From Kudoa neothunni (lineage: Eukaryota > Animalia > Cnidaria), in the NCBI GenBank assembly GCA_964304625.1, contig OZ199839.1, forward strand, positions 5,834,311 through 5,898,310: a stretch of 64,000 nucleotides of DNA. Direction: 5' to 3'. Position numbers and translations under genes: made by a program. Below the pieces are notes generated by a model, which worked only from the letters and a program-made list of their open reading frames with translations, did no database searches and was not told the origin of the DNA. Positions 1-52,800 of this stretch are shown in pieces; the first letter of the stretch is position 1, and every line of letters begins with the position of its first letter.

Positions 1-900
1 ATACACGTCTGTTGTTAGTGAATTTTTTTGTTTATCACTGATGAAAATAAAGTGGGCCTCAATTGAAGAATTAGTCCAAGTAATACAACCAAAGTTTATA
101 ATAAGGATTCTACATTATGGTTTTAACGTGTTTCATGGAATATAATAGGAAAAAGTTCCTCCGCCTAAAAGTTTAATAGTCGACGTTACTCACCCATGTT
201 TTCCCACTGGATACAAAACTATATTCGATAGTAAATTAATGGAGGATGGCTGCAACTTGAAATTATTACCAATTTATTCTGCAAAAGTGACGGGGCAATA
301 CAATTCCAATGCCTGCCAACTGCTGATTCACTCTATACTTCACAATAGTAAAAGATGCAACCAAAACCAACCTTGCAACTTTTCATCTATAAAAAAATTG
401 ATTTTTGGGAATGAAATAAAACTAATTAATGTATATTGGTAAATTGAGTTGATTAATAAATTAGATAAAGATTTACAACCCATATTTCAATATCGCTGAA
501 ACGGGATCAAAGGACCTAAAATTAATTATTGAAGGAGAAATTAAATAATTATAGCTCTTCGATAATTACTAATGAAAAAATAGTATCTTAAAATTTTCGA
601 AAAAATATCAATAAATATAACATTAAATAAAATAGTAATTGTAATGAAATTTAATTTAATTTAGACAACTGGGGAAATGACGTCACGTTGTTTCCAACTA
701 AACATTATTTACAGTTTATTAAATGATAAATCACTCATTAGTGGAGATATTACAGTTTCACTCACAATAATGTAAACCCGTCGTTATTAGACATTATTAT
801 TCACTTATTTTAGACCGATATACAAAAAAACTTTTATGAAAATATATTTTTCGAACATTCCCTTTGGATCTATATTATCCGAAAATGAAATACACTAGTA
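1..900 (+). CDS. Divergent GDA1/CD39 (ecto-NTPDase)-like gene, copy 1; 3' part only, multi-exon, possibly pseudogenised
   Basis: Manual translation gives YTSVVSEFFCLSL, then after an intron VTHPCFPTGY...GCNL...VTGQYNSNACQLLIHSILHNSKRCNQNQPCNFS, then CFQLNIIYSLLNDK at about 689-730. Order and Cys spacing match the CD39 C-terminal lobe (YTHSFLCYG, DPCFHPGY, GNYQQC, C..S.C.F, YCF...Y..LL). Clearly paralogous to 12.9-13.7 kb and 16.7-17.5 kb. Confidence 0.65.
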
Positions 901-962
901 TTTTTTATGTTTATTTACTCAATTTACTCATTGTTTTATCATCTAACGAACTTGAGGTATTA

Positions 963-3054
963 CAGTAGGCAATCGATTTTTCGTACTTTTTAACTTCTTG
1001 TTTCTCGTCTGCTCCAAAAGTCTCTGTAAAGATTTAATATTAGAATATCATATTAAAAATTTAATTAAAAAAAGTTTACAAATAAAGAAAAAATGATGAA
1101 AATACGAAAAATCCATTGTTGCGGATTTTCGTAGTTTTTAGATGGCAAAAAAATAAAAAAAGCATAAAAATTAAGGAAGAATTTAAAATAATCGAATATT
1201 TTGAACACTTGCCCTAGTAGGGAGCGGAGGATGATACTGTTCGATATTTTAAACTCCTTACAACTTCAACATTGGATGACATTCTTAATAAGAGAGAAGA
1301 AATAGTGAAATCCCATGATGGTGGGATAGCTTCATCGAAAAAAATTGAAATGTAGTATCAACAAAGAGCTTGATTCTGAGAAGTTTGAGCGGATTAATTT
1401 GATGCGCTAAAAAATAGAGCTAACTTCTATTGATATGATCAATAAAATGAGAGAATTGCGCTCAAATTATTCGTGTGTGGATTCATTAATAACAGACGGT
1501 TTAAACTTTAAAAAGTTTTAATCAATATTCAATCTAAAATGGCTAAATTATCATGATCTTCGTATTGTTGACAGCGATACAATTAAAAGTGGATTCTGAT
1601 GTTATTAGATGTAATAAAGGGCTGCTCACCCGACTGTGGTTTTAAAATTGACGAAACTTTTCTATACTATCAGCGACACGAGCTAAAAATTTTGTTTGTA
1701 TTATGTTTTGCATGGTTTTAGGAGAGAGCTGTGTCACAACTAAGGAGAATGCTATAACCGAATAAAAAAAAGTAAAAAGAATAACAATCCTCTTTGATGC
1801 TTTATATATCTGATAAGAAACTCGATCCTTTGATTATTTGGAATTCTGCTAATATTGAGGTGCTCCTAAAATGTAAAAAATCTTCTACTAAAGTATGAGT
1901 GCTGCGAAAAACATGAATGACCGATTATATGTTTATAAAATATATAACCGGTTTAAATAAGTTTTTTGAATAAATTACAATAAAATTTTTTTATATTTGA
2001 CAATGCAATTTCTAATGTTCACAATCATTTAAGTCACAAAAATGGTTTTTCTTCCTCAAAATACGATAAACGTTTTGCGGCCTTTAGATCAGGGTATTAT
2101 CCACTGGTTCAAAGCGGCATATAAAAGAGAAATTATAAAAAAGTTCTACGCATTCACAAAAGCTGGCTCTCTTCCATCTTCCCCAAATTATCTGGAATCT
2201 ACATTTTTAACTAAAGAAGCGTGAGATTCTGTTAGCAATAAGATCTTATTAAATTGTTTCAAGGTAGATATTCTTCTGCTAATGATAAAGATATGAATCA
2301 TGAAATTACGCTCCATTAACTAACAGAAATTGACGAAAGGATTCTAGAGGAGCACGATAATTTTTTATGGATGAAGATTCCGTTAACTTACAGCATAACA
2401 TAGAAAAGGTAAAAGAACCACTATGAAGACGATATATCCTAAGATTTACCAATTGATGATAATTCTTAGAAGGAAGTTATAGAATCAATTCAAAAACTTT
2501 AAAGTTCCATAAAGCGTAATGCAATTGACGAATACAACTTGGTTATAAAGCTGGAAGGTACACTGTCAAACGTATAGTAAAAAAATTCGCCAAATTAAGA
2601 TAGCTGATTATTTCCGCAAATTCGATTCTTAAAGTCGTTTCTCAATATTTTTTCGTTCCTATTAGCAATTTTTCATTATTGATTATCAAAATTGATAAAA
2701 ATCGATGAGATAAGATAAATAAACCATTACTATCGTTTCTTGTGGTTGCAATAATTTAATTCGAAATCACCTAGCTCAAAACTTCCAATAGTATAAATCT
2801 TTATTTAATCATAAAGAAAATTTATACTTAAAATAAATATGACTGAAATAAATGTTGAATGTCAATTAAACTTGAAAAAAATAAATTTACTCATATGAGT
2901 AATAACATTAAACGGGTTTGTTTTTAATAATTTATGTTAAATTAAACAGAAAATGTGATGAATTTTAATGGAAAACCATTCAAATCACTCCCCAACTATC
3001 ATGATTCGTAAGATGCGCATGCTCCGAAACGTATAAAAAATCGATTGCCTACTG
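963..3054 (+). mobile_element. pogo/Tigger-type DNA transposon with decayed DDE_1 transposase
   Basis: TIR CAGTAGGCAATCGATTTTT at 963 and its reverse complement ending at 3054, with TA on both sides. Internal VFLPQNTINVLRPLDQGIIHWFKAAYKR matches the Tigger FLPPNTT..LQPLDQGII..FK motif. Many stop codons. Confidence 0.92.
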
Positions 3055-6000
3055 TATAAATCCAAAACCGACATTAATCTAATCATTTAACTATAACAAC
3101 TCGTTAGGTCGGGAAAATTTATTTATTTTACCATTTTATGATGTAAGCATTTAATAAAAATTTGGAGGAAAAAATAAAATACCTCATTAACTTAGCATAC
3201 TATAGATCCCATTTTTTGATGAATGTTATTATTAAATTTTTAATAAAATGACTGCTCCATGGTTGAAAAATTCATTAAACAAAGTTTGCGCAAAACGTTC
3301 GTTATTTCTACAATTAATCTCTCGTAACCCATGTCGACCAACATGCAACTGATGTCCTAACTTTAAATTGAGCATGGTTGTTATGCCCGCATTGTAACGT
3401 TATTTCTAATAATTAAATAAAACAAAAAATTTTTTCGGCACAGTTCATATGATTGAACAATAAACGATTTTATATTGGAGACTACCAATGTTTTTGTGTT
3501 TATAACGAGAATCGCTGTTATACTACCATAATATATGACCAATGCAATAAAGAGAAACAGTTAACGTCTACCCATATAAAATTGGTAAAATAATCAAAGA
3601 TTTATTTTCTATTTCAAACTTTAATATCTTATAAATATAATCTATCACCGTTTTTGTATAATTTAAAAAGGAAGTGATCTTTATAATTCCTATTTTCATT
3701 TCTCCTGATTATCCTAATTATTCTGATGGTAATAATGATGGGTAGTTTCCTATGATGTAGTTGGAGAGAAAAAATAATCTTGCAATGGATAGATGAAATA
3801 ATGTTTATGAAAGTACCACTATCAATATAGGGTAGAATTGAGAGGATTTTTAAAACATCCTCTACAATAAGGGGTTTCAATCAAAATAATTGTTGATCCT
3901 TTCCCCGATCCTACATCCAACTTTAAACAGTGAATCGAATATATACTAGACTGGTTTTCTACATGTTTTAATAACGGTATTGTGAAGAAATAATCAAACA
4001 CACCAATTTTTTTTAAAATTACTATATGAAATCCTTGATAGACTTAGATGATATAGAATTTAAAGCATAATTGGATGTCCTAATTTTGGGGCTTTTATAA
4101 AGACGGAGTAGAGGACTTTTCATTTGAATGGAGGAGCATCTAAACTACCTTGAGAAGATTCGGCCAATAAAGGAGACTTTCTAACTTATGTACATCCCAG
4201 CAATTAAAGAGAATTATTCACCATCACATTTTCCACATTTTCGTAATTTCAAAAAAATTATCAATTTATTACGCCAACAAAATTGAAATGAAGAAATTTT
4301 GTTATCAACGGGAACCAATAATGTAACAAAAGTGGGTGAAATCAAAATACCCTAAAATCATTCTTCATTACAATCGTAAAAATGAGGTGTCATTAATATC
4401 GATAGAATGATATCATCTTTTTTAAAATATCGATTTAAGCGACAAAAGCGAATTGTGGCATTCTTTTATATAATGGATCTTTTATTAATAAAATGTTTTG
4501 CATTACACATTATATAAAAATTTTACGTTAAAAAATACAACGTATTTTCATGACAGAAATTGCACAATCTCGATGACCAAAAATTAATGGACAGAATCAG
4601 CAAGTTAATAAATATATTAAAAAAAACTTGATTCAAAGCTATTTGAGAAAAATCGCTTATTATTTTTCTTCGGCGAAGTGATAAAATACCAATGTACGAT
4701 GCTTTAGTTGCGGAGCTATTTTCTGCCTATTTTATTCTTCTCGGCATCATATTTGTTAATAAAATATATTCTTAAACTGAAACCATTTTTGCAAAATTTT
4801 ATCGTTTTGTTCACGTGCTTATTTTGGTTATAAACTAGATTTTATTAATCCTAAAAGATTACGAAATTATATTTGAACATACCGTAGGGGTTAAAACGAG
4901 ATTAAATAGAAAACTTGAGTGTATTTCCTCTAAAATTTTTGTTCATAGAATTATTTTACAATTTCATAAGTACTTGTATTTAATTTTATAAAAAATTTGT
5001 GGTTTAAAATACCCCAAGTACGTTGGAGATTAGTTATTTTTGATTATTTCAACCTAGAAATGTTGGTTTAGTGAACGGTCATCGTTTTTTATGTACACAA
5101 GTGTTCCAATTAGTGATGAAGGTATCAGTGTAAGTGGTACCACCGATCTACCTATATTATTCTCATCCTACACGATGTATATTGGGGCTCAAAAAGAATA
5201 CAGGCCATTTTTTGGAGTACGAAGTAGCCTTAAAATAACCGTATACGTGTTGACATGTCTTGTTTTTCTCACACTTGTGCTTTTACCGATAATTATGCTA
5301 ACTGTGCTCAAGAGTTTACTGTGTTACAGGCCCAATTTTATCAATGACCTCTAAACACATTCTTCAATTTCTGTCGTCATGTTTTTTTAATTTTACTGAA
5401 AAAGCTGTATTTTTTAAGCGTGAACTGTGATTTATTTATTTTTGAATTTAAAGGTTCTCATCCGTTATTTTAAGATTTACCCCTCGTCTTGATAAAAATA
5501 ACAAAACTACCACCTTAACTGAAAACTTTATTCATTTCTACATAAAGGTTGTACACTTATTTAAAATATTATTAAACTACATCTTTAAAAGATAACGAGG
5601 CATAAAGGAAAGCGGCATATAATAGTATTATAAATGGTTGTTAAATACTTATTCGTAAAAACATTTAAAAATTTCTACCAAAATTTTAATGGAGATTAAT
5701 AGACCTGAATAATACGATTCCTTAGAAATTTTGAAGTAGGTAGAAAATATCATTGTGCAAAAACTGTCCTTCAACCCAATTTTGATATCATTGAATTTAT
5801 CCCTCTTCACCTCACCTTTATTGCTGGTTCAAAACCCTGAGCTAGAGGGATTTATTAAAAAATGGGGGGGGGGATAAAGTAATTATCAAATTTTGTTAAA
5901 ATAAATAATGAGTTTACTTTCCTTTTTCCATTCCTTCTGTATATCTATGAGATTTTTTTATTATTAAATAATTAAAAATAAATTTGATTCTCTATTGAAA

Positions 6001-7949
6001 ATTAAAAAGGTAATTGTTTTCTTACATTCTGTGTATATTTAGCACTTGTCGAATGCGATAAAATCCACCCGACAATTAATTCAAATACAGAAGGATAAAC
6101 TATATTGGTAGATTTTGAAACGAGATTGATTTCACTTTCTAGAAATCAATTAATAATTTTATGTAATATATATATTATATTTGTTAATTTGTTTCGTCTA
6201 CATTCGTCTACATTCGCCAAATCGCTTTTACTTTTTATAGTAATTTTTTACAAGTGTGAATGTTTTTGAAAATTTTTGTTTTAATATTGTCTAAAAAAAT
6301 TAATAATTAGAATTAATTCCTGTATGTATTTGTGTTTCTAATGCATTACTACAAAATAGTTAAAACGAAAAATCCGCAATATAGACATATTTCTTTATAT
6401 GAAAATAAATTAAGTTAGAATAGAATATTAAAAATTTTGTTTTGAGTTAAATATATTATTTTAATAAATATTCAATTTAAGTCATCGTGTAAAAATTTCG
6501 CACAAAAGCTCATCAAAAGGAGCAATGTCAATTTTCTTCTGAATATAGAATCTATCTACAATTTTAAATAAAAATTAATTGATAATTAATTTCTTTCAAT
6601 ATTAAAACTATGGCTAAATTACAGTATACGTGTGGATCTTCGGACGAAATTTGTGCGCGCCTCGGAAAATATTGGATATATTTTTCATTTGCTAATATAT
6701 TCGTTATATGTTTAGAGAGTGTAACTCAATTCCTCTTTTAATACTTTATTTTAAACAATTAATCAGATATATAGTCACCCAGATTTTAGGGTATCTTATT
6801 AAAGGAATTCCGGTACTTTCGCTTGAATGTTCCTCAAATATATTCTATACAAATTGTATATTTTATTACGAGAGAAACTAACCATCTTTAATGGATAAAA
6901 GTTCCAAGGGTTAATCTCTAATATTTTAAATTATTGTAACCACGCCAATCGTCCGTCGTAAGGTCGAGCCCAACTTGACATTATTTGACATAATAGTTTC
7001 GAGAATTTATCTGAGTCAAATCCTTTAAATTTTTAAGAATCGTCTCCTTCTTCACCGATTCCATCTATTACTTAATATTACTGATGCTTAAAAAGCTTTC
7101 CTACGGCGTATTTTGTATTTTCTTGTTTATAAGACAGTTTCATAATTTGTAAGATTATTTTCTTCTTTTCTAATTTCGTTGGATTCTTCGTCTAATTTTA
7201 AAGTCATCATGTTCCTAACAATAGGTTTTTAATTCTATATTGTTGAATTTGTTGATATATTCCCAAATGATGGTGCAAGGCCTTCAATAGGCCATATTTG
7301 GAGGATGGCCTTTATCGCAATAAAAATTATCCACAAAGAAAGCCTCGACATTTCAAATATTGTCTTATTTTGAATGAGATATCTTTTCCTGCAACAATGC
7401 ACTTGAATAGGTTCTCATCATTTACATCCTTCCCAACTGCTGTGTACATATTCACACCGTACCCACATGTATAAACAAATGTAGAAATCCCACATTTTGT
7501 GAAAATTTTTAGAATATATTCAGGGTAAAATTGAGAATAACCGGACTTAAACATTGAAATGGTTTTAGAATCTGCTAGTGTGAGTATTTTTGCAAAAAAT
7601 ACTCCTAATACACATTTTTTTTGTATTCTCGCAGCAATCGACGATGATAACACGTATATTCGTATTTTGGTCCAAATTCTCAAATAACTAATAAAGATAT
7701 AATAAAAATAATTGATTAATATAATTTTTTGAAGTCTATATCGGCCGCTACTAAACATTACTGTAAAACGTTTCGGTTACCAATTTATATTAACTTCAAT
7801 ATTGTTCGATAATTTAAAATAGGTCTCCTAAATCTTGCTAAAAGTTTGTCTAAACAAGATAAAATCACAGTTTCAAACATCTCAAAATTTTGGGAAATAT
7901 TTAAACCCCAAAAATATAAAGATAAAATAATTTTTACAATTGGGTAGTT

Positions 7950-8898
7950 TCAATGCGGGGAAAAAAATATAATCTAGTTTTTTTAATGATCGAAAAATCT
8001 TGTATTATTGCTAAAGGTATTTAAAGAAATGATTTTATCAGATCTCAACAATATGAGCCAGTGGTTTATTAACAAAAAACAGGAAGGTTTTTATTTTATT
8101 AAAATAATGCTCATATTGTCCTTAATCGATCGATTATTTCGAAAACATCCAGCTCCTAATTCTATCAAAAATATTGCGTGTGTGGTGCAACCAATTTATC
8201 TGGGAATAATTCATCGCATAAAAGCCAATTTGAGAAAGTATTGTGCGTAAATATTGCTATTCAGAGAGAAGGACACAAAAATATTTAAATATGCCGTATT
8301 CGATTGTTAAAATACGTTAAAATTGGTTGGGAAATTGTTACGGTTAAAAAATTAGTAATTGAGTTAATAATCCGCCTATTTTCAAACAAAAATAATTTGT
8401 TCTTTCTTCATTTTTATTGAAAAAATAGCAGGATAATACTTTAAGGTAATGTGATCATAAAATAACATTATAAAGTAATTAATGGAAAAATTTGAATATT
8501 CGTATATGTAGATAATAATGTGTAAAGATATTATTTTGTTGGAGAAAATAAAATTTTACATTGAAATTAAGATTATCAAGGTAAATCTACTTTTTTGGGT
8601 GAAGATATTGATCTCATACACAACGATGAAATTGCTACAACGTTTCAAGTATAAAATGTTATAAAAACGTATGTCATTAAGGATCCTATTAATTATTATC
8701 TGTACTTCAAGGTAAAGATGTCTTACGTGAAATTATTAATAAATTAATAAAAAATTATAATGTATATAAGTAATTTTGTAAGAAATGTTAAATTAGGAGT
8801 TATTAGGCGTGCGTTGATGACTCGATATTGCGTAATGTTTTGCTAGAGCGTTATTTTAACGCTCTAGCAAAACATTACGCAATATCGAAACTCGACTG
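7950..8898 (+). mobile_element. Degraded pogo/Tigger remnant with right TIR
   Basis: ORF 8008-8250 contains PAPNSIKNIACVVQPIYLGIIHRIKANLRK (QPLDQGII-like). The end ...AATATCGAAACTCGACTG|TA resembles the TIR CAGTCGAGATTGGATACTGCGTAAT at 31205. Left boundary uncertain. Confidence 0.6.
8822..8888. repeat. Perfect inverted repeat with 32-bp arms and a 3-nt loop
   Basis: TCGATATTGCGTAATGTTTTGCTAGAGCGTTA-TTT-TAACGCTCTAGCAAAACATTACGCAATATCGA, read directly. Confidence 0.97.
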
Positions 8899-9189
8899 TA
8901 ATTTGAAAATTCCAACACATTATAATAAGATAATGTCTATTTATTTTATTATATCATGATTGCCATATAAGTCCTTTGATAATTATCATTGTTATAGATA
9001 ATAATTTTTTGTTGTTAAGGATTTTTAAAATCACTAATAGAGAGTGCAGTAAGTTAAAAATAAATATCTATTACAAATTTCACAATAAAATATAGTGATG
9101 ATCTCACAATATATTCCTTAATTTTTCAATAACTCAGTAAACAACACTTAATCGATCCAACGTATTATTGAAAATAAACATAGTTTGTT

Positions 9190-12100
9190 ATGATGGAATG
9201 GACATTTAAGCATCTGGTCTTTTCTTGTATCACAATCTGTATTTATGTGACAGTAAGGGAACCCAAAAACGCCAACCAAGTATTTCTTATGGTGTCATCA
9301 TTAAAAATTTTTTAAACCAATACCTAAAAAGTTTGGCGTGATCGTATACAAGACTATCACATCTGCCTGGTTTATTTGTTATGAAAGGAAAAATTTGGAC
9401 AATAATCCAAAGAAATGGTTAACACCGCTCACACCTACAAACAACCATTGTAAAAGTAAGAATGTTTAATTTTGTATGTTAAACTATCTATTAAATACAT
9501 AATTTATAACATATAATACATAATAAAACTTTTTTTTATCCAAAATCCACAACCCAAACGCTCTCATCACAAAATAGGAGATATAGAAATTAAAATATTA
9601 GAATTTTTTAAAGGTTTTACTAATTTTTATCTAAATACTATATATCTAATAAAATATTTAGTTATTTATAATCGTTTCCTGACAGATACATTAAGTATAA
9701 TAATGAGACAGTTAATAAACAACGCAAGCTATATTAAATTATATAGTACAATTTAGTAATTTCATCTAAATAGATTTTGTGAAAATGAAAACATTCGAAT
9801 ATTAAGAGTAGGTATAATTTTGCTTATTAGGTTATATAGGTTATTAATTAATTGGTTTATATCAAAATAATTAGACTGATTTTACCACTCCAAAATTTAA
9901 TTCTCTTCATTAGTTAATATATATCAATCTTCTTTTTGCGTATACATTGAAATAATTTAATTTTTAACGCAAAATATTTAATAACTATTTTTATTTAATT
10001 AATTATAATATCTAAAGATGGCATTAAACCATAATATAATTAAGACAAAAGAAGTTAATTATTGAGGTAACATCATTGAATCACTAAAGAAAACTTTTCT
10101 TGTATAATAATTATTCCGAGTTTTGTATGGTGAATTCAGGATTGTAATATTTTTAAAGTATGTAAAAAATCATATATGCTTAATTAATGAGAATCTGGTC
10201 TGAATAAATATGTATTAAAACTTCCCATAAATTATATTTTTAGATTGCGCCCGCTTAAAACAAATTTTCCCATTTTCAGTCCAGCATCTAATTAAATTCA
10301 TAATTTAACCATGATGAATTAATTAGATCTAGTTTTTCAAAAGTGGAACATTATTAATCTGGAATATCATTTAAAAAATTTAAAATTACGATATGTTCAA
10401 CAAAATTCTAATGAATACTCTAATATAATTTTTTCAGTGAATACTTATGTCTAAGATAAAATTTTTGTGGAGTTACTCTTTAGAATTTTAGTCAAATTTA
10501 AGATGATAAAACATTTTTTGTGTAAATTTATTTAATTAGAATATAAATTAACCTTTTAAGTAACAATTAATCAGACCCCCTCGGAGCATAACTGGGGTCC
10601 ATTTGGAACCTTGATTTTTTTTCGCGATTTCTTTTAATAATAGTGTTTCTTATCAATATACTAAGTAACAATTTTAAGAAATATTTTGTTCGTTAATAAT
10701 TTATCGTTTTGTTCTTCCTAACGCATCCGCCTATATGCAATGTTCCTATATAAATAGGATGGCAGATTACTTTAAAATGATTGATACTGGAATACGTTAG
10801 TATCTCCACAAACACATAATGTAGATGCTGGATCTGCTAAAAGGAAAAATTTTGAGCTGTATTTTGTTGGCTTATATTTTATATATTGTATAAAAGAGCA
10901 ATTGCCTCTAGAAGAAACCAAAATGCTCATCACGACATATATTTTCCCCGTGGTTACAATTTTTGTTCATCACCTTAACCTAAATGTCCCATATTTCTCT
11001 AACTGGGGAAAATTTATCATTTAGCTATCATTCCTCCGTAGTTTCTGCTTTATTAAAGTGGAACGCTCTTGTTAGTTGCTTGAATCTGTACGAGGGAAAA
11101 AGATCTTGTATATTCCCCCTACCTTCGTCACAACTAAACATTTCAACAATAGGCTCCTGGATATCCTTATGGATAGTTATGTACAATAAAGATCCAATGA
11201 AACCATGCATTTCATCAACATAAACATCCTTCAGTTATTTCCATAATAATTCTTATCGCATTGATTGGTATATTTAATTGTTCGTTCCATTATTTCCATC
11301 GGGAAGAAATGATGAAAACATCCTGCAATACCAAAGGTCCTTCTGATTTATCAATGTGGTACATAGTCATATCTTTAAGGAAATTCATTTTATTTTCTTC
11401 CACCACCTTGATTTTCTTTGGTTCGATTGCTCTCTATAAATCGTTGTTTATGTTTACAAGCGAATCTTCTCTTCGTCGCATACGAGATTGGTATCATTCT
11501 CATCGTTGATAGTACCCTTCAAGCGCACTAGGTCGGGTGTTTATTTTTCATTAGTATCAATACTATCCTTGCTACTTTTCCCAAAGAAATCCATGCTTAC
11601 ACAATAGAAATTTACACATACGAAGGTGCGTGGTGCTAAATTATTTGTTAGATTTTGGTATGTAAAATACGGTTAAATTCAATTTTCATTTACAAATTAA
11701 TATAAATAATAATATATTATTAATATATCAAAAAAAATTCTGAAGTCAATTTGGACCCCAATTATACTGTGAAGATGTTTTTGTTTTAGAATTTGTTATG
11801 ACGCCTGAAAATTCCAGTAAATCTAATCCTCTCAAGATAAATGTGATTTACGAGAATGGAAGAGGGTTAAATTCTAATTATTACATAACGACTGGGAAAA
11901 CTGGATGATAATCTCGTTTGAGGTCCAAATGGATCCCAGTTTATTTAGAAGGCTAAACTAATATTATTATTCATCTGTATAATTAAGTATCAATGGACAA
12001 TAATTATTGTAAGAGATTAAAGATATAAAAAACAAATTATAAAATTAAATAAAGTCAGTTGTATTGAAACGTTATTTCATTGTATTATGAAATTTATAGT

Positions 12101-14118
12101 ACATATGATAAAAATATTTGATAATAATAGTCAAAATTTGTTTAAAGTCATAGACATTATTATCATTAATCATAATTGATTTTATTTTTTTAAGTACGTA
12201 AGTCAAATTTAATATAATTTTAACTAGATAAAATAGTTTAAAAAGATATTTTGTAAAACTGTTATATTTAATAGTCAGAAAATATAAAAGTATTAATTTT
12301 TATTATTAATATACCTTATTAGAGTTAAATGCTTAAAATCTGTAAGTGATGTAAACATTTCACATAAGGAAATGGTCATGTTACGTTTTTTTTTACATAA
12401 ATTAGTCGTTGAACTGGATTTATTATTGGATTATTCAAGATTACTATAACAAGAAAAAATGCCTCATCTCTGCTGTTAGTCACTGCAAATGGAATAAGAC
12501 TGAACCATACGAAATTGCGGTAAGCTTTGTCTATTCTGTGTATTTTAGACACGAGTATAATCAATGTTGCGTTGTCGTATTTAATTTTGCCATTTTTAAA
12601 GGATTATTAAAAATGGGGAATTTGAATTAATTTTGAAAAATGATTCACATTCGATACAACCTATTAAAAATGCTAAGCCGTTCCTACTTCAACAAGTGAA
12701 AATTGATGAAAAGATGAGTGCTTTGGTAGAACTCTTGAAGCATAACCACAATTTAATCCACACAGTAATTTATTCGTTCCTGTCCGAATAGTTAATAGAT
12801 TGCCGCAAGCAAGCAAACCTAAAACCATTGCTTTATTTTTCATCAATGGGTGTTTTTATGGGATTGTTCACAAGAAATCCTAATCTATATGACGACTGGG
12901 TGGTGGAAAAAATTTACTATCGAGCAGAAAATTTTTGTGGCTGCCGTCCTATAATTTTTATTGCTTGGGCGCTCATAAACTAAAACAAGCAACCTATCAT
13001 GTGTTAGCTCAAGTATAATGATTGATTATGTTATTTTTATAATTGTCTCCCAATAAAAAGGATAAAAGTCGTTCCAAAACAGCCTCCCACGGGAAAATAT
13101 TCCATCCTTGTATTATTGATGGATATTCCGACGTGTTTAGTTCGAGTATGTTAAGCAAGACATGCTTTGCAAAACCTTTACGTAGGTATCGAGTTAAGTT
13201 TGTCGGAAAATACGATTTTGAAAGTATGCGAATCATTAATTCATCGCATATTCTACGCTGATGACCTTTGTAATGAAAACAGTCACTGCAACTTTTCCAC
13301 TGTCAAAAATAAAATTTATCTTGAACAGCATTAATAATATACAGGTTGTTATATTTAAAAATTTGACAACTTAATGATTTCGTAAGATTTACAACGAATA
13401 TTTCCACGTTTTCAAAAGAGGAGAACGAAGGCTTTTCAGCTTCACTATTACAATACCTGGCTAATCATTGCCAAAGAACCAAACCAAATTCACGAATGGT
13501 ATTTAAATTTTCCTCCATTTTTTATGATGTGTTCAGCATGAGAATATTAGATTCCACAAATGTTTCCAACTAAATATTATATATGCTGCAATACGAGATA
13601 AAAAGATAATTCCTGTAAATGTTGTTATGTCCCTTGTACAAATGTAAATTAATTATATTTTTCTTTTGTATTTAAAGAATGAATTTAGTACCTCGGACAT
13701 ATTTTATTCACTTAAGGAGTATATACTCTTTGACCCTCTATATAGTTCTCTTTCGAATGGAAGGGAAAATGAAACAATGTAACTATCATTATTGAATTAG
13801 TAATGTATTATTTAACGAGTAGGACCCCAAAATCTCTCTTAGCCGGCGAAAGCCTCACCAGCCAAACCATTGAAGGTTACTCTCAAGTTTTAAAACAATG
13901 CTGATCCATTTCCTTAATTTTCGTTTCTCTAGCTAAGAGTTATATAAAACTGAGTGGAGCTAAAATAAAAATAAAGAGAACCAACTCATCTATTACACTC
14001 CCATAAAATAATAATTGTCACACTGGTTTGTTTTATTTCCATAACACTTATAGTTTCCATTTTATTTTGTTTAAAGGAAATTATTGGAATATTTCAGAGC
14101 ATGCAAAATCAACTATAG
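9190..14118 (+). pseudogene. Divergent GDA1/CD39-like gene, copy 2, split by a piggyBac element and frameshifted
   Basis: In order: hydrophobic N-terminus MMEWTFKHLVFSCITICIYVT (9190); ISYGVIIKNF (ACR1 position); HLPGLFVMKGK; CKWNKTEPYEIAVSFVYSV (ACR3 position, about 12485); KTIALFFINGCFYGIV (ACR4 position, about 12820); IFHPCIIDGY...CFAKP...KFVGKYD; CFQLNIIYAAIRDK (13561); C-terminal TM IIIVTLVCFISITLIVSILFCLK; stop at 14116-14118. Confidence 0.65.
10576..11953 (-). mobile_element. piggyBac element, internally deleted and decayed
   Basis: Minus-strand translation HGFIGSLL...RFKQLTRAFHFN...DKFSPVREIWDI...DEHFG...IQYIKYKPTKYS matches PGBD transposase motifs. Inverted termini share ACTGGGGTCCATTTGGA (about 10591) and TCCAAATGGATCCCAGT (about 11924). 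Confidence 0.8.
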
Positions 14119-15420
14119 AATATATACTTTACGCTAGTTACTGTTTATTGTCTTTTAAAGCCATTTTTTCATCTTTTCAAATTTTATTTCGGCGTATAAT
14201 TTAGAATAATTCAAAATAACTTTCGACAAAAATATCGATAATCTTTCATAGTTGATAATTGATATTCTTGTCCTTCCTAATTTGTAGACAGGGAGAATAT
14301 TGGCTGTTTCCATATTATACTTCCTATCTTCAGTGCAATCAAAGTTGGATTATCCAGAAAGGAAATTGCTAGTTCCAAATTTCCTATTTAATTGTGGTTT
14401 GAATGTGTTTAGATCAAAATGATTGTTAATAAAAAAATAACACAAAATTATTACACGGACAAATGAACTTCTTATTAGCACTTATAAAACTTGAGTATAA
14501 ATTAAATTTATAAAAAAAAATTTTCTATTTTAAAATATAATAATTCTTAATTAAAATCAAAAATACAAGGAATATCGCGATTATTTTATACAGTAGACAA
14601 GAACTACAGTAATGGGTCGATCGTACGTAATCCCACTGGGGACTTCAAAAATGAAATATACTAGATCCTGACGCAGGAACCAGTTGAGATTAATATCTTA
14701 TTTTTTTTCTTTGTATTTTTCAGATAAATATCTTTTGGAATTGTTTATGACTGGAGCTACTTTTTTTGTATTGATGTGGGATAAAATTTTTTTGGGCAAG
14801 GATCAATTTTCCATTCAAACAAAAATTCATAATTTTGTATATTTATATTATTTATGTTTCATTTTTGTGACTATTTTATTAAAATAAGCGGTTATAATGC
14901 TCCAACCTTCGAAGCATATGAAAAATCAAAAATGCGGCTTACTAGTCAAAAATTTTGGAGGACACCTGTCCTATCCCAATACGCATATCTCGTACTATAT
15001 GCAATATACTTTACATCGGGTGTGTTTTTTTTGAGTTTCATTATGCCAGTAATATTTTAATTGCAGAAATATGTTAAACATAAATATTTAATTACTAATG
15101 ATGTTTCTGAGTTTTTTATAGAATGAAATTGTTTTTTTTTGTTTAAACTATGAGCTTAATCATATTATTAAACACCAACAAATCATAATTATATAAATAT
15201 CATCAGTCTACATCTGTAACACAGAATTTTTTCCACATACTTGTTAAATAAAGAAGCGAATTTAAGTTTTTTATTAATGCTCTACTACAAAAATCAACCA
15301 AGTCGATCTTAAATAAATAAATTAATTAATACACACAAATAATGATATTGAAGATTCTCATTTAAAATCTAATTTATTTACGGCTCATTATTTATTATTA
15401 CACTCAATATGGACCACAAT

Positions 15421-17854
15421 ATGAAATATTATCTCTGTTGGAATTCTTTTATATTATTTGCTGTATCTCATGTGTTAATCATGATTATTCTAATTCCTCA
15501 GTTGATATTGTTGAAATATGTACTAAAAACCGCAAACAAGATCTAAAACAAGTAAATAGAATATAGACTTAATTCAGATATCTTGAAGAGTAACAATTGA
15601 GATAAATCTAAAATAGAATATGCTAGATTACCATTATTAATAAATTAATGAATCACTTTTCAGCTAACTGACAACTTAAACTTCGTCATATAGTTATATT
15701 ATTGAAGTGCTGAATTCGTGTATCATGATATGGACATTTTTGTGTCCTACGAATTTTTATCATATTGGTCAGTGGTCATTCAATTTTTTTGCCGGAGGAA
15801 ATAAAAAAATGTAACCTCAATCGAGATATGGAATAAACGATGCAGTTCTGCATAGATTAGAGAGTTTGGAATAGTAATATATAAAAAAATGACGACTGCC
15901 TGGTTTGTTTGTTATGAGAGAAAATCTATCCGGTATTATACCAAGAGAGTCGAGGAACAAATCAAACTCAAATTCGACTATTGCAAAAGTAATTCCATTA
16001 GCATTGAACAGCTTTAAGTGCCAATCGAATTGAATTTTGGTTAAAAATACCATTTTATTCATATTATCTGTATCTTGTTAACAAAACCCCCGAAGAATTG
16101 GTTCATTGCTTGCATCATACCTAAAAATAATAATTACATTCATATTTATTGCTGTATTAAGTGAAACTAAATAAAAAAGTAAGTAAGTAATTTGATAAAA
16201 TATAATAATTAATATTCAAGATAAAGATATTAATCAAGACTATTTATATGCTGCCTTTAAAGTGTGCCAGTGGAACATTGATGAAGCGTATGATATTGTA
16301 GTAAACATAGCGTATTCCCTGATCTATATATATATATATATATATATATGAGTACATAAATATATCGATTAATATTAATTTAGTATCTTTTAAGCTACAA
16401 TGCATACGACTACAACCAAATATTGGAGAGAAATCTGAAATCGTTAATTCCTATTGGAAAAATTCAAAGAATGACATGTAAGCAGGTGAAAATTGACGAT
16501 AGGTTAAGCGGCCTGGTTCAACATATAAAAATAGATACAAGTTTTTCTGTGTGGAAATTGGTCTCATGCATTCCTTCAATAATATAGTAATCTACAGAAA
16601 ACAGACTACAGGCCCTACGTGTATTCGTCAAAAATGGGGGTTATATGTGGGGAAATTCATCAACTCACCTAATCTATATGAAGAATGGATGGTGATAGAA
16701 ATATCGCTTCAAAATATAGTTTACACATCAGTTGTGAATAATTTTTCCTACCTAAGTAGGTATAGAATAATACATGCAACACACTTTGTATTATTCCAGG
16801 TAGTGTCTATCTATGTTAAATATACGATGATCATTTAGATATCGACTATATAGGAGAAACGTTTTTCTAATGTTGATGGAAGAATTTCACATCCCTGTAT
16901 TATCAATGAATACACTGATGTTGTTTACACAAATATGCTGAATGAAATGTGCATTGCGAAACCTTCAGAAAAATATCGAGTAGTATTTGTTGGAAAAATA
17001 CGATTTGGAAGCTTGTGTGTCTCTAATTCATCACGTACTCCATAGTAATGATATCTGTGGCAGAAACAAAAACTGCAACTTTAATAGTATCAAAAATAAT
17101 CTCTTTAACAACAAAAAATAATGTGATCAAAATATTTTAAAAATTCTATAAATGATACGTTAAATATATTTACAATGATTATTTTGTTAATCCGAAACAA
17201 AAAAATATTAACGTAAGAGAATCACTGCTACAACATATAAATCAAACTTTTGTCATGGATCAAAAAAATCTAACATTATTAGTAGCCCAATGTTTGTCTT
17301 TTGTAAATTAGTTTTAATTGTGATTCTAAGAAATTAATTATTTATTTGATAAATGTTTCCAACTCAACGTTATTCATGCGTTATTGCGAGATAAATCAAT
17401 AATATCTGAAGATACTTTGATGTCTCTTGAGTCAATGTAGATCGAGAACATTTTAGGTCTGCTTATTTACATATTTAGTTTTTCAAAAAAAATCAATTCA
17501 AAACTTGAGTATATATTTTTTGATTCACTATCAAGTGAAAAAGAAATTGAAATTATGTAAATAAGATCATATTATCGATAAATGTGTTATTTTAATAGAA
17601 ATAAAGTAAAATCTACTACAATCACGGACACCTCTACCATTGTACCAACTACAGATCTGCTTTCTCGAGTGTCTAAATTCATAGAATTTAATGAAACCCA
17701 AACCAATCCTAAATTGTGTAACTTCGCCAACTGTACCCATAAAATTACAGTGATAACCTTGATATGCCTTATTGCGATAATTCTGATTGTTTCAATTTGT
17801 TTGTGCATAAAAAATTTGTGTTTATATACAAGGAATCTCCACAGAGATCTTTGA
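15421..17854 (+). pseudogene. Divergent GDA1/CD39-like gene, copy 3: signal peptide, NTPDase fold, Ser/Thr stalk, C-terminal TM; contains stops and a frameshift
   Basis: MKYYLCWNSFILFAVSH (signal-like); YSYIIEVLNSCIMIWTF (ACR1 position); RLPGLFVMREN; CQWNIDEAYDIVVNIAYSL (aligns without gaps to ACR3 TGQEEGAYGWITINYLL); IVYTSVVNNFSYLS; ISHPCIINEY; CFQLNVIHALLRDK; STTITDTSTIVPTT stalk; TM ITVITLICLIAIILIVSICLCIK. Confidence 0.7.
16326..16349. repeat. (TA)n microsatellite
   Basis: Read directly. Confidence 0.95.
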
Positions 17855-22811: not shown

Positions 22812-22861
<50 letters not shown>

Positions 22862-23700: not shown

Positions 23701-23713
23701 GTTAATACGAAAA

Positions 23714-31204: not shown

Positions 31205-34640
<3,436 letters not shown>

Positions 34641-41488: not shown

Positions 41489-42157
41489 TCAGTCCATAGA
41501 ATGACCTTTGGAGCTGAGACTAAGGATGTGATGGCGTCGATGTTTCGTACAACAGTCAGGAGGACAGATTGGGGCGCAAACGCTTTGGCAAATTGTAGGG
41601 CATACAACTGGAGGAGGTGGTGGTGGTGGTGGGGCACAACATTGAGGTGGGCAATCAATATTACAAACCTCAACTGTGCAAGTTGGAGGACAAGGTGGAG
41701 GTGGTGGCGGTGGTGCAGGAGCAGCACCAACACAACAGTACTGAGGGCAAGATTCAACGCAGTTGTTATAGCAGGTGTATGGGCAGACTTGAAGTGGTGG
41801 AGGAGGTGGAGCAGGAGCGCCCGGTTCCCCAGGTGGACCCATAAGGCCTTGTGGACCAGGTGGACCTGGTGGTCCGTTTGGACCTTTCATCCCAGGAACG
41901 CCTGGAGGTCCAGGTACTCCAGGTGGGCCGGGTGGAGGTGGGGGAAGATCTGAACAACACATCGGGGGACATGCTGGTACGCAAGTTGTGGCACAGATTG
42001 GTGGACATTGATTGATGTATTGCTTTTTTATGGAAGCACCTAGTTTGAATTAAACCAACTGAATGGGACTTTATTTAATAAGACGAATACTTGCTGGTGT
42101 CGGGTTGGCTAGAAAAGATATTGCAAACAACAAGCACACATCGAAAACCACGACCAT
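41489..42157 (-). CDS. Ncol: Minicollagen (nematocyst/polar capsule wall protein), 205 aa; exons 42157-42091 and 42039-41489, 51-nt intron
   Basis: Signal peptide [17 protein letters not shown]; N-terminal [21 protein letters not shown]; polyPro; 13 Gly-X-Y triplets; polyPro; three C-terminal CRDs. Spliced length 618 nt is in frame. Confidence 0.97.

Positions 42158-45967: not shown

Positions 45968-45998
<31 letters not shown>
45968..45998. repeat. (AAT)n microsatellite
   Basis: Read directly. Confidence 0.95.
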
Positions 45999-47836: not shown

Positions 47837-48889
47837 TTAACAGTGACCGGAAAACTTAGAAATAATAGACAATTTAATATTTTCTTTAAGTTATTAGTTT
47901 ACTTATATATTTATTTACCCATTGAATACAACACATAATATGTTACATGGAAATAAATTGGAAAAACCCGACGTTTTAATTTTATATTTCCTACTGATGA
48001 TTAATTATAGTTAAAACAGGATACAAACCATTAAAAATAATTTAAATTTAATCGAAAATTAAATTTTATTAATAATAATCTTTGGTCAGTTATTTTTTTA
48101 AATTAATATTTCCTATGTACATAAATGTAAATTTTTTTGATTCGATTTACTTTTCAATTAGAAAAGTAATGATATTGATAATTAAAAAAATATTATTATA
48201 ATGTATAAAAATGTGAATAATAAAAGTTGATTATTTATTTTTGAATTTTATCCAAAATAAAATGAAAACTCAATATATATATATATATATTAAACGATTA
48301 AAAAATAAAGCTTATTTTAATAGAGTTAAATAATTTGTGTTTTTCTCTACTCCCATTTAATTAATTGTAAATACTCATATCGTGCACAGAAAATATTGTT
48401 ACTCCCAAACAATGAACAATGTTTAAATAATTCCGTGGATTGAATAAGTTTTTCATATATAAAAATTGTTAAGTTTTTGATTCAGCTTTGACAACATATA
48501 TCTCAAGCTATATGCGTAATATATTAATTTTGATTTATTTGAAATTCCTTCCAATAAATGCAATATAAATTAACCCTATTATAATCTATTAATTCATATA
48601 ATGTATAATTAGAAATTTTTTTGTGATATCCCCATTAAAGTCTGTACAACATAAAATTTAAATCTTAAAGTTTATTATAAAGAAAAACGTTAATCCAATG
48701 ATTTTTTTATCCACATATTTTTATTCTAATACATAAGAATGATTTTATTCAATCCGTAACATATTTGAATAAAAAACATAATTAACTGCAACTTAGAGAA
48801 ATAGAGATTTATAAATTCCATTAAATAATTAATTATAGTAATAAAGGTCTCATACAATAAAAATTATATGGAGTGTAACAAATATAAAT

Positions 48890-51565
48890 ATTATTCATAA
48901 CAGTAATAGTATTCAATATCTGGAAAGAATCTAAAATAAATATATTTATAAAAAATCTATCAACTCTTAATTTAAATAATAATTATTACTTTTGTACGCA
49001 GTACTCGCATATGACACAGGTGTTGTTTAGTTACATTGTCAGATTAAATCAAATCTCCCTCTCCCTATCAAAGTAAAATTAATTTGTCACCCAATATGGA
49101 AATCATGCAAATAAAGTAATAGTATTTTCAATAAATCAAAAAAAATCATATCAATTTTGAAGTTACCTGAGATAACGTGTACTCGATGTTCTGGTCATCA
49201 TCCTGATCCATATAACAAAAATAATCACCCAAACAAATAAAATTGCTAATATTATTCCAGTTCCTAGCGGTGTTCCCTTTGCTGTAGTTGTTAATGGGTG
49301 GGCAAGCAATGTGGAAATAGTTTCTGTTTCTGAGCTTTCACTTTTATATTAAACTCGTTATATTGTTTTAATCAACTAAGAATTTATACATCAACGATGT
49401 TAATCTGGTTTCTATTTCTTCCTCTTTTAAAACAAATCCTACTCTTGGGTCAGCAAATATATATTTTTTGAATGAAAGATCAGGCATATTTCTATAAAAT
49501 ATATTTTATTTAGAATAAATCAAAATAACATTGTGTACTTTTTCTTCACTATCACCCTCTTACCAGTGAATCCTATGACATCTTTTAGTAAATATCTCAA
49601 ATAGACTGCACGGATACAGTTAAATTTGGGGTTTTCCATCTTAAATATAACATGATAATATTTTAGTTAATACGAACGGTTACTCTATATTGTTCAGAAT
49701 CTTCGATACAAATTTTATTTTGAATTTTTTCTAATTCATCATAGATATCGTCAAACTCATTTGATTTGATCCAAGGGGTGTACAGCTTATATAATCGATT
49801 AAGTGAGATGTATATTTAATTGAATGGTGAAATCAACCCTATTAGACTATTATATACCGTCAGCTCATCTTTTCCTTCTATCAACAACGGAATGTTCAAA
49901 TCTGCAAAATTTGACTTTATTTGTGGATCATAATCAAGATTTTTTATGTTTATAATTTTTGTGATCAATTTAATACATTGTTTTTCTTCAAATGCACCAA
50001 TAAACTTTATCTCAGTTTGAACTTTTTCTTTAAAGCATCGACTGTCCTGATTAGCTCGATCTAAATATTTCCAAGTATTTTCTGCCATGCAAGGATGAGG
50101 AATGTTGTCGTTCAATTCTGAATCCTACGTATTATTGATTGTTGTTAATATTGATAATTGAAAATAAAATTATTTTGGTACCAGAATAAGTTGTACCAAT
50201 GCAAGATGCTCAATTTTCCACGGAGAAGCACACAAAAAGTTGTTTGCAGCCACGTGAAAATTTTTTGGTCCATAGCTGACACTGTATTTGATTTGGGGAG
50301 GGTATAGTACATGGTTCACAGTAGTATATCCCATAAATAAAATATCTTCGCGCAATATCACCGTTAGATGTGGCTTTATTTTCTAAACACTATAAAAAAA
50401 ATAAAATAAATAATATACTTCATTCTCAATGTCAATGTTAGTGAGACCAAAAATTAAAAAATCCCTCGTTCTGTCATCATACAATACTTGTGATAACACA
50501 TTTTCAACTCTTAGATATTTTTCAACCGTCTCCCAATCCTTCAATATTTTTTTCTCGAGCTCTGTTTTATCTGAACTAACAAATGAAATGTTTAATATAA
50601 TCAAATAAATTGTAAAATAAGTTTAAATTAATATACGTTTCTTTGAATCTATCAGCGTAAAACACTTTGAGAAATATGTCTTGTTTCGGAACACTTTTCC
50701 ATGCGGGATGCTTTTCATACACGTTTTTTTCACATTCTTCCATATCTCCAACTAGAGCGGTTAAATTTCCAAAAAATATAAATACATCAAAACTCAAACA
50801 TTAAACAATAATAACTTATTAAATATGGCAAGATTATACAGTAGGCTACCACTAATTCATAATTCTTGTAAGATTTAACAAATACAAATAAGACAGCACT
50901 TAGCTCAAATTCAATCTTTTTAGGAATACATGCGGAATAAAATAAAATATTAAGATAATGTTTTCTAATGTTTACGAGAAAACAAAGTCAATCATTTTTA
51001 TGAGTATCATTGTTATTTATCGTCCATTAGACTTCGTATAACAAAATGGAAACTTCACTTGTTCTACAGTAACCGTAAGTTTTAAAACAGCACATTTAAT
51101 TTTTGCGACGCATTTAAAACATCATGTGCGGTAAATGTTTGTCCGCTTTTCTTTAGCGTCTTCATTTCTTCGTTGGCTTCATCATGAACAGCCTCAATAG
51201 AAATAGTTGCATCATTCTTACTAACAGGTACGAGTGTTTTTCTCATTATAATTATCTTTGGTAGAATATTAATTTGAATCATTAATAATTGTATCTGCAT
51301 AATTTAATGGCGATTAATTTTGAGATTATTTTATGATTATCATTACTTCTTAAATATCTACTCTTATGTAACCTAGCGCCATATCTGCATTGATCATATA
51401 ACGTCTTGATCAATTATTGCGATATATTAATACAAAGAATCAAATAATTAAATAATTTCCAGATTTAAAAGCTATAATACTTACGTGGTATTTTTTTTAT
51501 AAGTAAATTCGATAAATTGACGTTTTGATGACTATTACCTTTATCTATGGACAGATTTATTTTCA
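48890..51565 (-). CDS. Divergent GDA1/CD39-like gene, copy 4: many short introns, C-terminal TM; both ends approximate
   Basis: Exons in CD39 order: EECEKNVY...IFLKVFYADRF (ACR2 position); QVLYDDRTRDFLIFGLTN (ACR3); DILFMGYTTVN (ACR4); FHVAANNFLCAS (YTHSFLCYG); IPHPCMAEN...CFKE...KFIGAFEEKQCIKLI; NCIRAVYLRYLLKDVIGF; ADPRVGFVL (ACR5 AGWTLGYML); TM GIILAIFICLG. Confidence 0.72.
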
Positions 51566-52099
51566 TAGTTTTTGTTTTAAACAAATTATTTTATTTAATT
51601 TGGTTTGGTTTGCAAGCTGACCAATTGAGTAAAAATATAACACAAAATTATCATGTATTAAATAAAGATAGGTGAGAATACAGTTAGAAACTAAAAAATT
51701 TGTATAAAATAATTTTTACTTTTATTTTATAAAAGAAAATCTTCGGGTCCATTGGATCCCAAGAACGACTTGACGTTACGTGACGTGGTGTAATTGTTAT
51801 TTAAAGCGGGGAAATAAAATTTCCCATGATTTTGGAAAAAAGATTATGGAAATATATCACAATTTTGAGGAATAATATTGGTGATTAACCTAGTTAGAAT
51901 TACAGATAAACTATAGATAGTTCAGACATTTGCGTTGGGGTCCAATGGACTCCACACAGGCTTGGAAGATCAAACCTATAAATAGTCATACGTTACATTT
52001 TTAAATAACCAATTGCAAAATTATCCGATTTTGAAACCTTTAAAAATGATTTCAAAGACAACTAATTCTATATTTTTTGATCGAATCCAATTAAATCAT

Positions 52100-52800
52100 G
52101 TGTGATCACGCTGATGATCGCCTTCGTCGTTCCTTTTTCTTATTGACCTTGTACTCATAGAAAGCATAGTCTTCTCATAAGCTTCCACGATTTTGTGGTG
52201 TTTATCCAGAATTTCATTTTAAGGTAGAAATATTATATGGCACCAATTTATATTGTTTATGAGGCAGTTTATCATAAAATTTGATTATTTTTTTAGTGAA
52301 TAATTCAATGTTTATCCATTTATGTAATTTTGTACAAATTTAGTGACATTACTAATTACAAGTAAATGCATGAATTAGACACTAAAAAATCAATAATTAA
52401 TATATTATTGCGAGATATTATTAAGTATTATATTGTAATTTAGCCTCGGAATATGCGGAAAATAGATTAGTTACGAATTATCGGTAACCCAACGTATATT
52501 GTAACCAGAATTTTAGTTCAATAACTACGATATTGAAATGATTACCTTCACATCTTGAAATATATATTGATAATAAAACCTGTTTATTCGTTTTCTGGTA
52601 AAATTTTGTTAAGTCATAGATGACTATGTCGATGTTTTCCCTGTATCTGACCATGATCATTCCGTACTAAATTAAGATGAATGCTAAATCATTTATTTTG
52701 AATGTATACTATTGTTTCAAATTGACCTCTTATTACCAAAGGTATTATTGTTGAAATAGCCAACGATACATACAAAACATTTTGCAGCGACCTAAATGTA
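52100..52800 (-). pseudogene. 5' fragment of a further CD39-like paralogue (copy 5)
   Basis: Hydrophobic exon NVLYVSLAISTIIPLVIRG, then after an AG acceptor YGMIMVRYRENIDIVIYDL...SRCEG, aligning without gaps to CD39 YGIVLDAGSSHTSLYIYKW. Confidence 0.45.

Follow-up and report, generated by a model that had tools for sequence, protein, structure and literature searches.

What kind of gene is represented by a group of intron-rich loci scattered over a stretch of Kudoa neothunni DNA, and could their products still act as enzymes? The stretch (contig OZ199839.1, positions 5,834,311 to 5,898,310 of the forward strand; 64,000 nt, referred to here as the window) was the subject of an original prediction that five related loci encode membrane-anchored proteins with the fold of the GDA1/CD39 nucleoside triphosphate diphosphohydrolases (NTPDases, or apyrases) but without their catalytic motifs. 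NTPDase activity depends on five apyrase conserved regions (ACR1–5), in which ACR1 DxGSS, ACR2 ATAGMR, the ACR3 Glu, ACR4 DLGGAS and the ACR5 Trp provide phosphate and metal binding and water activation. The reading favoured here, at a probability of roughly 0.7, is that the window contains four loci of a lineage-specific, NTPDase-derived family of membrane pseudoenzymes, two of them apparently intact and two broken.

Introns in the window are tiny (~36–72 nt), so that exons show up as separate short open frames. All homology searches were run exon by exon on genomic open frames, unjoined, and the genome searched comprised 40 Mb in 4 contigs. Labels of the form L036, L046, L049 and L052–L056 denote individual loci of the family.

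A dispersed family of paralogous loci

Paralogue links within the window were drawn from all-against-all BLASTP of stop-free frames. Copies 1–3 are linked exon by exon at E values of 1e-4 to 5e-17. A Cys-rich exon reading 'HPC..C..FVGKY..C..LI..C..CNFS' (the HPC exon) is common to copies 1 (149–439), 2 (13043–13331) and 3 (16854–17118), all on the + strand, as is an exon reading 'CF.LN.IY.LL' (665–772, 13528–13644 and 17330–17437, respectively); for these two exons, both of which had been predicted as shared blocks, the E values run from 1e-7 to 5e-17. Exon A is common to copy 2 (9305–9466) and copy 3 (15856–16014). Copy 4 (49819–50124, − strand) is reached by the family queries at E 0.001. 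The fifth predicted locus is unconfirmed, as described below.

Genome-wide, the copy 1 HPC exon matches 27 places, most of which are open frames without stops; the predicted expansion is therefore real, and is dispersed rather than local. The exons of copy 4 match ~10 further loci, which form a second subfamily, and the two subfamilies cross-match at ~E 1e-3. By these matches copies 1–4 are real paralogues of a dispersed, genome-wide family of at least 27 loci in two subfamilies.

The anatomy of subfamily 1 was obtained by clustering the frames of 14 paralogous loci with their flanks. Exon A ('K(Y/F)GIVI.K......FICY.R') is routinely followed by an intron of 3–5 kb. Then come exon B ('C.W.....V..IYSL.F.Y'), exon C ('(D/N)E.SSGLIELLKYNYDF'), exon D ('FSIGIFTNNP.LYD.W.VKEFSI...KYTA.VN.FYCL'), the HPC exon, exon E, exon F ('CF.LNIIY.LL'), exon G ('F.DP.FGSI') and a transmembrane (TM)/tail exon often ending in RDL. 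The similar C-termini of the cytoplasmic tails, HRDL (17840–17854), INDL (5340–5354) and ERDL/VVDL (tails of L040 and L041), may be a sorting signal. Subfamily 2, examined in 3.2-kb loci taken from the genome search, includes copy 4, L049 and L052–L056. Its exon order is the same and its consensus different: A' 'YGIILMK.VDKI', C' 'D.LTFGLTNIDI', D' 'LIFRE.ILF.GF...P ... Y.I.AN.F.CASP' and G' 'FADPRIGF'. The HPC exon of this subfamily lacks the last Cys pair, and a Ser/Thr-rich, mucin-like stalk, long in L052–L054 and short in copy 4, precedes the TM helix.

A member was also recovered from a metagenome (ENA ERZ28624939, scaffold_21136, here L050). This contig of 901 nt, with 30 % GC, carries the end of exon C and exons D, HPC, E and F in the same order. 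Its identity to any copy of the present genome is at most 38–45 % (HPC) to 58 % (D), so that a second organism must have the family too.

Descent from GDA1/CD39 NTPDases

Relationship to NTPDases is carried chiefly by the HPC exon. A profile of 14 HPC exons aligned by hhalign to an alignment of 106 ENTPD3 sequences at ENTPD3 residues 293–372 (probability 96.6 %, E 6e-10), with a score of 64.8 as against 13.6±2.3 for column shuffles. When the same profile was run against 1.84 billion representative proteins, five matches were returned: one family fragment, two repeat artefacts and two cyprinid ENTPD3 proteins, the latter at the homologous residues 289–369 (E 1.5e-4 and 4e-4). As cyprinid ENTPD3 is the sole match that is neither family nor repeat, and the parasite's own canonical NTPDase is Cys-poor, an origin from the host is conceivable, though unlikely. 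The Pfam model GDA1_CD39 (PF01150) matches the copy 1 HPC exon over profile positions 238–297 at E 9.3e-5; the check proposed with the original prediction thus yields a hit on one exon, at 21.7 bits, short of the gathering cut-off of 24.9 bits. No other family exon matched the model in single-exon searches, and a six-frame Pfam scan of the genome found none of the family loci. Annotation pipelines based on Pfam will consequently miss these genes.

Further exons fall on ENTPD3 in the order expected of an NTPDase. Exon A aligns to residues 57–95/121 (E 0.025, or 0.011 with both subfamilies), exon C to 161–199 (E 0.67), exon D to 249–286 (E 0.11–0.14) and exon F to 422–449 (E 0.036, or 0.011 with both subfamilies), so that A, C, D, HPC and F are collinear, although A, C, D and F are individually weak. 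With hhalign, nothing meaningful was obtained for exons B and G, for exon C taken by itself, or for exon D when only subfamily 1 was used. As a control, 60 column shuffles of each exon profile were aligned to the same ENTPD3 alignment. The real profiles outscored 60/60 shuffles for A, F and HPC and 59/60 for D; exon C was not above its shuffles. Top matches of shuffled profiles fell at the same place in only 2–4/60 cases for A, C, D and F, and in 25/60 for HPC, the target region of which is larger.

All five Cys residues of the HPC exon align with Cys residues of ENTPD3, as do the 'F.C' Cys of exon D and the 'CF' Cys of exon F. The Cys scaffold of surface NTPDases, predicted to be kept, is indeed kept in subfamily 1; one pair is lost in subfamily 2, and hence in copy 4.

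Structural models were built with AlphaFold2 (AF2) from two genomic open frames spanning exons C and D together with the tiny intron between them, with paralogue exon fragments supplied as separate alignment rows. The C+D piece of a subfamily 1 locus (L046, 137 aa) gave a predicted local distance difference test (pLDDT) score of 74 overall and 78–91 over exon D. The model shows a beta-hairpin together with two more strands and one helix, the arrangement with which lobe II of an ASKHA fold begins. In a Foldseek search of 350,542 PDB chains, NTPDases from four lineages (Legionella, rat NTPDase1, rat NTPDase2 and legume enzymes) occupied almost all of the best ~40 ranks, at E 0.013–0.3 and a TM-score of ~0.25. 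Since this piece excludes the HPC exon, it lends independent support to NTPDase descent. A feature search of the ESM Atlas with two unspliced pieces returned AT-rich viral hypothetical proteins only and was uninformative. The modelled structure is consistent with an NTPDase fold and not decisive. Together, the HPC alignment, the sub-threshold Pfam match and the Foldseek ranking support the predicted descent, from a surface-type, disulfide-rich GDA1/CD39 NTPDase, and the ectodomain as a whole may have the two-lobe fold.

Absence of canonical catalytic motifs

A six-frame regular-expression scan for ACR1–5 covered the window and the one canonical NTPDase of the genome (L001). The latter keeps ACR1–4 as 'IIDAGSTGS', 'ATAGMRLL', 'GVLEGVYQW' and 'ELGGASLQ'. 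No canonical ACR1–5 pattern was found in any family exon of the window loci. Retention of canonical motifs in the same genome indicates that composition drift is not the cause of their loss from the family.

ACR1 is the region that can be placed best. The hhalign comparison sets 'kyGIVI-x-K-x-x-x' on 'kYGIViDsGSS' (E 0.011–0.025), with no gap and with anchors at either end. In place of the Asp stands a hydrophobic or aromatic residue, followed in most cases by Lys, and Gly-Ser-Ser gives way to variable residues; no Asp or Gly-Ser occurs in the 14 members. The equivalent segments are 'FGVIVYKTITS' in copy 2 (9305–9466) and 'FGIVIYKKMTT' in copy 3 (15856–16014). A 'VDAGS' at 10821, in the long intron of copy 2, was rejected as an ACR1; about one such match is expected by chance (an estimate), and its strand context is wrong.

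For ACR2, (A/G)TAGMR occurs in L001 but in no frame of the window, and the equivalent stretch of exon B cannot be aligned. At ACR3, an alignment anchored on Gly and Asn-Tyr (E 0.67, not significant) matches the Glu with Ser, Thr or Ala in subfamily 1 and with Ala, Thr or Arg in subfamily 2, the Arg being that of copy 4. The ACR4 pattern D(L/M)GG(A/G)S is likewise absent, and the hairpin of the AF2 model on which this motif would be expected reads 'PFISIS-NTD-FSIGFIT'. Two registers are available, the hairpin turn (from the model and from the spacing to the 'F.C' Cys) or the next strand, and Asp-x-Gly-Gly is found in neither. For ACR5, no W.LG occurs in any frame; exon G reads 'F.DP.FGSI' or 'FADPRIGF' and gave no hhalign alignment to ACR5.

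Several motif assignments of the original prediction have to be revised. The strings that it quoted do occur in the translations, but 'YGVIIKNFL' (copy 2) and 'YSYIIEVLNS' (copy 3), offered as ACR1, are not the segments conserved in the family, which lie in the next exon (9305–9466 and 15856–16014). Likewise 'LFFINGCF', offered as the ACR4 of copy 2, is in a frame not conserved in the family; the conserved frame reads 'GVFMGLFTRNP'. The central claim, that the catalytic Asp is missing, survives the corrected exons and frames. The two superseded ACR1 strings (9288–9314 and 15689–15718, +) precede the true exon A of their respective copies by 40–170 nt and are read in other frames; each of the two copies has a pair of YG-hydrophobic motifs close together.

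With both phosphate loops lost, established NTPDase enzymology makes hydrolysis unlikely, and the family proteins would accordingly be expected to show no hydrolytic activity.

The copies in the window

Copy 1 had been delimited as 1–900. Exons do lie there, but the copy is cut by the window edge, with exons A–D upstream and a probable TM exon further downstream. Its features, on the + strand within the window, are as follows.

L036:2894–3034, 7416–7541, 7607–7783 and 7787–8053: exons A–D of copy 1, upstream of the window, placed by family exon matches
2–142, +: 3' part of exon D ('YTSVVSEFFCL...'), an open frame matching family exon D
149–439, +: HPC exon, Cys-rich, a single frame with five Cys, core 179–421, placed by Pfam and hhalign
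465–895, +: exons E (465–545), F (665–772, 'CFQLNIIYSLL') and G (791–895, 'IPFGSIL'), open frames
5058–5354, +: TM/tail exon of the family type ('KITVYVLTCLVFLTLVLL...NFINDL*'), placed by the TM-exon hidden Markov model (HMM)

The TM-exon HMM finds 5058–5351 at E 5.4e-6, its sole non-training match within the window, and 5058–5354 is probably the last exon of copy 1, 4.2 kb downstream, by an inferred link. Each of exons B–G lies within one open frame, and copy 1, partly outside the window, looks intact on its reading frames. A 60-aa open reading frame (ORF) at 2042–2224 (+), 'LRPLDQGIIHWFKAAYKRE', lies within the putative last intron and by eye resembles a fragment of a pogo/Tc5-type DDE transposase.

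Copies 2 and 3 had also been listed as genes; both carry frameshifts.

9305–9466, +: copy 2 exon A with ACR1-equivalent 'FGVIVYKTITSAWFICYERK', placed by BLASTP and profile alignment and preceded by a signal-peptide-like frame (9184–9312)
12406–12788, +: copy 2 exons B (12406–12627) and C (12600–12788, 'KIDEKMSALVELLKHNHN'), open frames
12792–13015, +: copy 2 exon D, broken; matches at 12825–12935 in frame 3 and 12953–13015 in frame 2, the middle piece in the third frame
13043–13331, +: copy 2 HPC exon, broken, with a frame switch near 13218–13237
13528–14118, +: copy 2 exons F (13528–13644), G (13648–13779) and TM (13975–14118), placed by BLASTP and the TM-exon HMM
15373–16014, +: copy 3 signal-peptide-like frame (ATG 15421) and exon A (15856–16014, 'FGIVIYKKMTTAWFVCYERK'), placed by BLASTP and profile alignment
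16199–16835, +: copy 3 exons B (16199–16348), C (16384–16584) and D (16503–16835, intact in one frame), open frames
16854–17118, +: copy 3 HPC exon, shifted by +1 within a run of A (~16993–16997), frame 3 to 16997 and frame 1 from 16996
17156–17854, +: copy 3 exons E (17156–17308), F (17330–17437), G (17441–17557) and TM/tail (17582–17854, ending HRDL*), placed by BLASTP and the TM-exon HMM

Because exon D of copy 2 needs three frames and its HPC exon two, this copy is a decayed pseudogene. The sole break in copy 3 is one extra A in the A-run of the HPC exon. Such breaks are not seen in other paralogues, so that the assembly looks clean, and copy 3 is more probably a young pseudogene than the product of an assembly error. 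Neither copy 2 nor copy 3 should be annotated as a functional gene.

The remaining features are on the − strand.

50579–50800, 50386–50622 and 50173–50382, −: copy 4 exons B', C' and D' (within 49166–50800), open frames of subfamily 2
49819–50124, −: copy 4 HPC' exon, three Cys, without the last Cys pair
49666–49815, 49523–49666 and 49371–49505, −: copy 4 exons E', F' and G', open frames
49166–49348, −: copy 4 short Ser/Thr stalk and TM segment
52481–52835, −: 'copy 5', a signal-peptide-like frame (52692–52835) and a 'YGMIMVRYRE' frame (52481–52666), a motif found by eye

All consecutive exon pairs of copy 4 from B' to TM can be joined by frame-preserving GT-AG introns of 36–72 nt, often with a GTATAT donor, and copy 4 looks intact over this range, to judge from its splice signals and frames. 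Copies 2, 3 and 4 all end in TM segments, as had been predicted. The frame at 51285–51413 ('YGARLHK') was considered as exon A of copy 4, and the profile gives it no support.

The 62-aa frame 52481–52666 of 'copy 5' has no paralogue in the whole genome at E<=10 and scores 6.6 bits (E 0.25–0.6) against the 14-sequence exon-A profile; its membership is unconfirmed. It may represent the 5' exons of copy 4, given that subfamily 1 routinely has a 3–5 kb intron after exon A, or equally nothing or something unrelated.

Selection and expression

Ratios of nonsynonymous to synonymous substitution (dN/dS), estimated by the Nei–Gojobori method (NG86) and summed over exon-wise local alignments, were 0.16–0.36 in six of seven paralogue pairs, including copy 2/copy 3 and copy 4/L052. 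The values are rough, since the alignments are local and dS (0.9 to >3) approaches saturation. They point to purifying selection on the coding frames, far from neutral decay, and do not support the original description of the family as fast-evolving. In three raw RNA runs labelled with the same species, 0 reads matched 48700–53000; the parasite is possibly absent from these runs, which therefore provide no test of expression.

Weight of the evidence and alternative explanations

Several observations weigh against descent from an NTPDase followed by loss of catalysis under selection. Even the best exon scores below the Pfam gathering threshold, exons B, C and G have no significant profile alignment, and a PDB sequence search with the HPC exon profile returned NTPDase1 only at E 0.78, amid noise. 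The folded models are C+D fragments, and the AlphaFold/Foldseek check, which placed NTPDases on top for the subfamily 1 piece, was poor for the subfamily 2 piece (pLDDT 64, with NTPDases mixed among weak matches). Subfamily 1 has a conserved Glu three residues, or one helical turn, before the canonical ACR3 catalytic position, and ACR3 and ACR4 can be placed only to within a few residues. The near-saturated dS and the absence of RNA reads belong here as well.

It is unlikely, although frame switches in two exons of copy 2 and one of copy 3, the 0 RNA reads (from runs possibly without parasite) and nearby transposon remnants would fit, that the loci are decaying remnants of duplicated NTPDase genes with no present function. 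Most of the ~27 HPC exons and the 10 subfamily 2 exons are open and free of stops, dN/dS is 0.16–0.36, and the Cys residues and hydrophobic core are conserved among paralogues that are 25–55 % identical. Copy 4, moreover, threads through short GT-AG introns, and an open relative exists in another organism (ERZ28624939).

That the proteins are still active nucleotidases, with catalytic motifs diverged beyond recognition by alignment, is very improbable. A surface location would suit an ecto-enzyme, a (D/N)E is conserved in subfamily 1 where the ACR3-equivalent helix begins, and the uncertain ACR3/ACR4 register leaves some room; against this, both phosphate-binding loops are without Asp and Gly/Ser in every member in either register, and a canonical NTPDase with textbook motifs is kept in the same genome.

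A chance match of one Cys-rich exon, with the remainder an unrelated fold, is scarcely credible: the HPC exon alone is individually significant, exons B, C and G are unaligned and the rigid-body structure comparison is weak, but four further pieces (A, the place of C, D and F) fall at collinear NTPDase positions, three of them above shuffles, and Foldseek ranks NTPDases first for a C+D piece from which HPC is excluded.

Comparison with known NTPDases

The cell-surface NTPDases 1, 2, 3 and 8 (for example fish ENTPD3, rat NTPDase1 3ZX3 and NTPDase2 3CJ1) share with the family the collinear segments from ACR1 to the C-terminal helix, the 'HPC...C...G..C...C....C.F' Cys pattern, the 'F.C' strand, the 'C...Y..LL' helix and a C-terminal TM helix that anchors the extracellular domain. 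Unlike them, the family lacks the ACR1–5 signatures, has a signal peptide (by eye) instead of an N-terminal TM helix, numbers ~30 copies rather than a few, has no exon that passes the Pfam cut-off and, in subfamily 2, has a mucin-like stalk and one lost Cys pair.

The canonical NTPDase of the same genome (L001, same contig, 7278507–7279569) belongs to the same superfamily and is likewise intron-bearing in an AT-rich genome. It differs in keeping ACR1–4, scoring 119 bits on Pfam and being of the Cys-poor type, and it did not match the family exons in genome searches.

Parasite ecto-NTPDases (Toxoplasma NTPases, Schistosoma ATPDases and Legionella Lpg1905) resemble the family in placing an NTPDase fold at the host–parasite interface. 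These are active enzymes thought to degrade host nucleotides (PMC8630654); with the catalytic motifs gone, such degradation is an unlikely mechanism for the present family.

Other features of the window

The GC content of the window is ~22–35 %, typically near 29 %, and a small AT-rich genome would fit a myxozoan. An open frame at 41492–42049 (−) has two CxxxCxxxCxxxCxxxCC domains, poly-Pro tracts and a Gly-X-Y run, and is a textbook minicollagen, by which the genome is recognised as cnidarian or myxozoan. A 235-aa ORF at 22508–23215 (+) matches the PiggyBac-type transposase domain DDE_Tnp_1_7 (E 1.7e-28). Dispersed, partly inverted, coding-like segments are repeated at 25031–26886 and 55053–57000, and at 19657–19788 and 21527–21634, with 44–91 % amino-acid identity; these are probably transposon copies.

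Possible function and significance

From the exon order, the favoured reading of an NTPDase-derived pseudoenzyme family would give a type I membrane protein with an extracellular NTPDase-like domain, comprising a signal peptide, an N-lobe (exons A–C), a C-lobe (D, HPC, E, F and G), a TM helix and a short tail; in subfamily 2 a Ser/Thr-rich stalk would stand between C-lobe and helix. Across the family the phosphate-, metal- and water-activating residues of ACR1–5 would have been replaced, and the structural core and Cys residues retained under purifying selection. Replacement of the one and retention of the other make a non-catalytic, surface-displayed binding or structural module, rather than an apyrase, the most likely mode of working. 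Of the roles first suggested (decoy, sensor, adhesin or variable antigen), none is favoured by the data over the others.

A more specific proposal is put forward tentatively, and is doubtful as it stands: that in a myxozoan a surface NTPDase gave rise to a multigene family of ~30 loci, whose catalytically dead ectodomains come in two architectures, one of them carried on a mucin stalk. Displayed on the surface of the parasite, these ectodomains might recognise ligands of the host, such as extracellular nucleotides that act as danger signals or molecules of the host surface, or they might be interchangeable coat proteins. The myxozoan T. kitauei reportedly has no P2X receptors (PMC10620158), which makes a host-directed role somewhat more plausible than one in the parasite's own purinergic signalling, albeit by a weak argument. 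No paper combining myxozoa with NTPDase, GDA1 or apyrase families, or NTPDase with pseudoenzyme, was found in the literature searched, which is incomplete and leaves novelty unproven.

Myxozoans are important parasites of fish, and little is known of the proteins on their surface or of the molecules through which they interact with the host. If the proposal is correct, the family would represent a hitherto undescribed kind of parasite surface family. A large, selected, membrane-anchored family built on a disabled ecto-apyrase fold would supply candidate host-facing molecules, whether as antigens, in adhesion or as decoys, and would be a clear case of the conversion of an enzyme to a pseudoenzyme followed by expansion.

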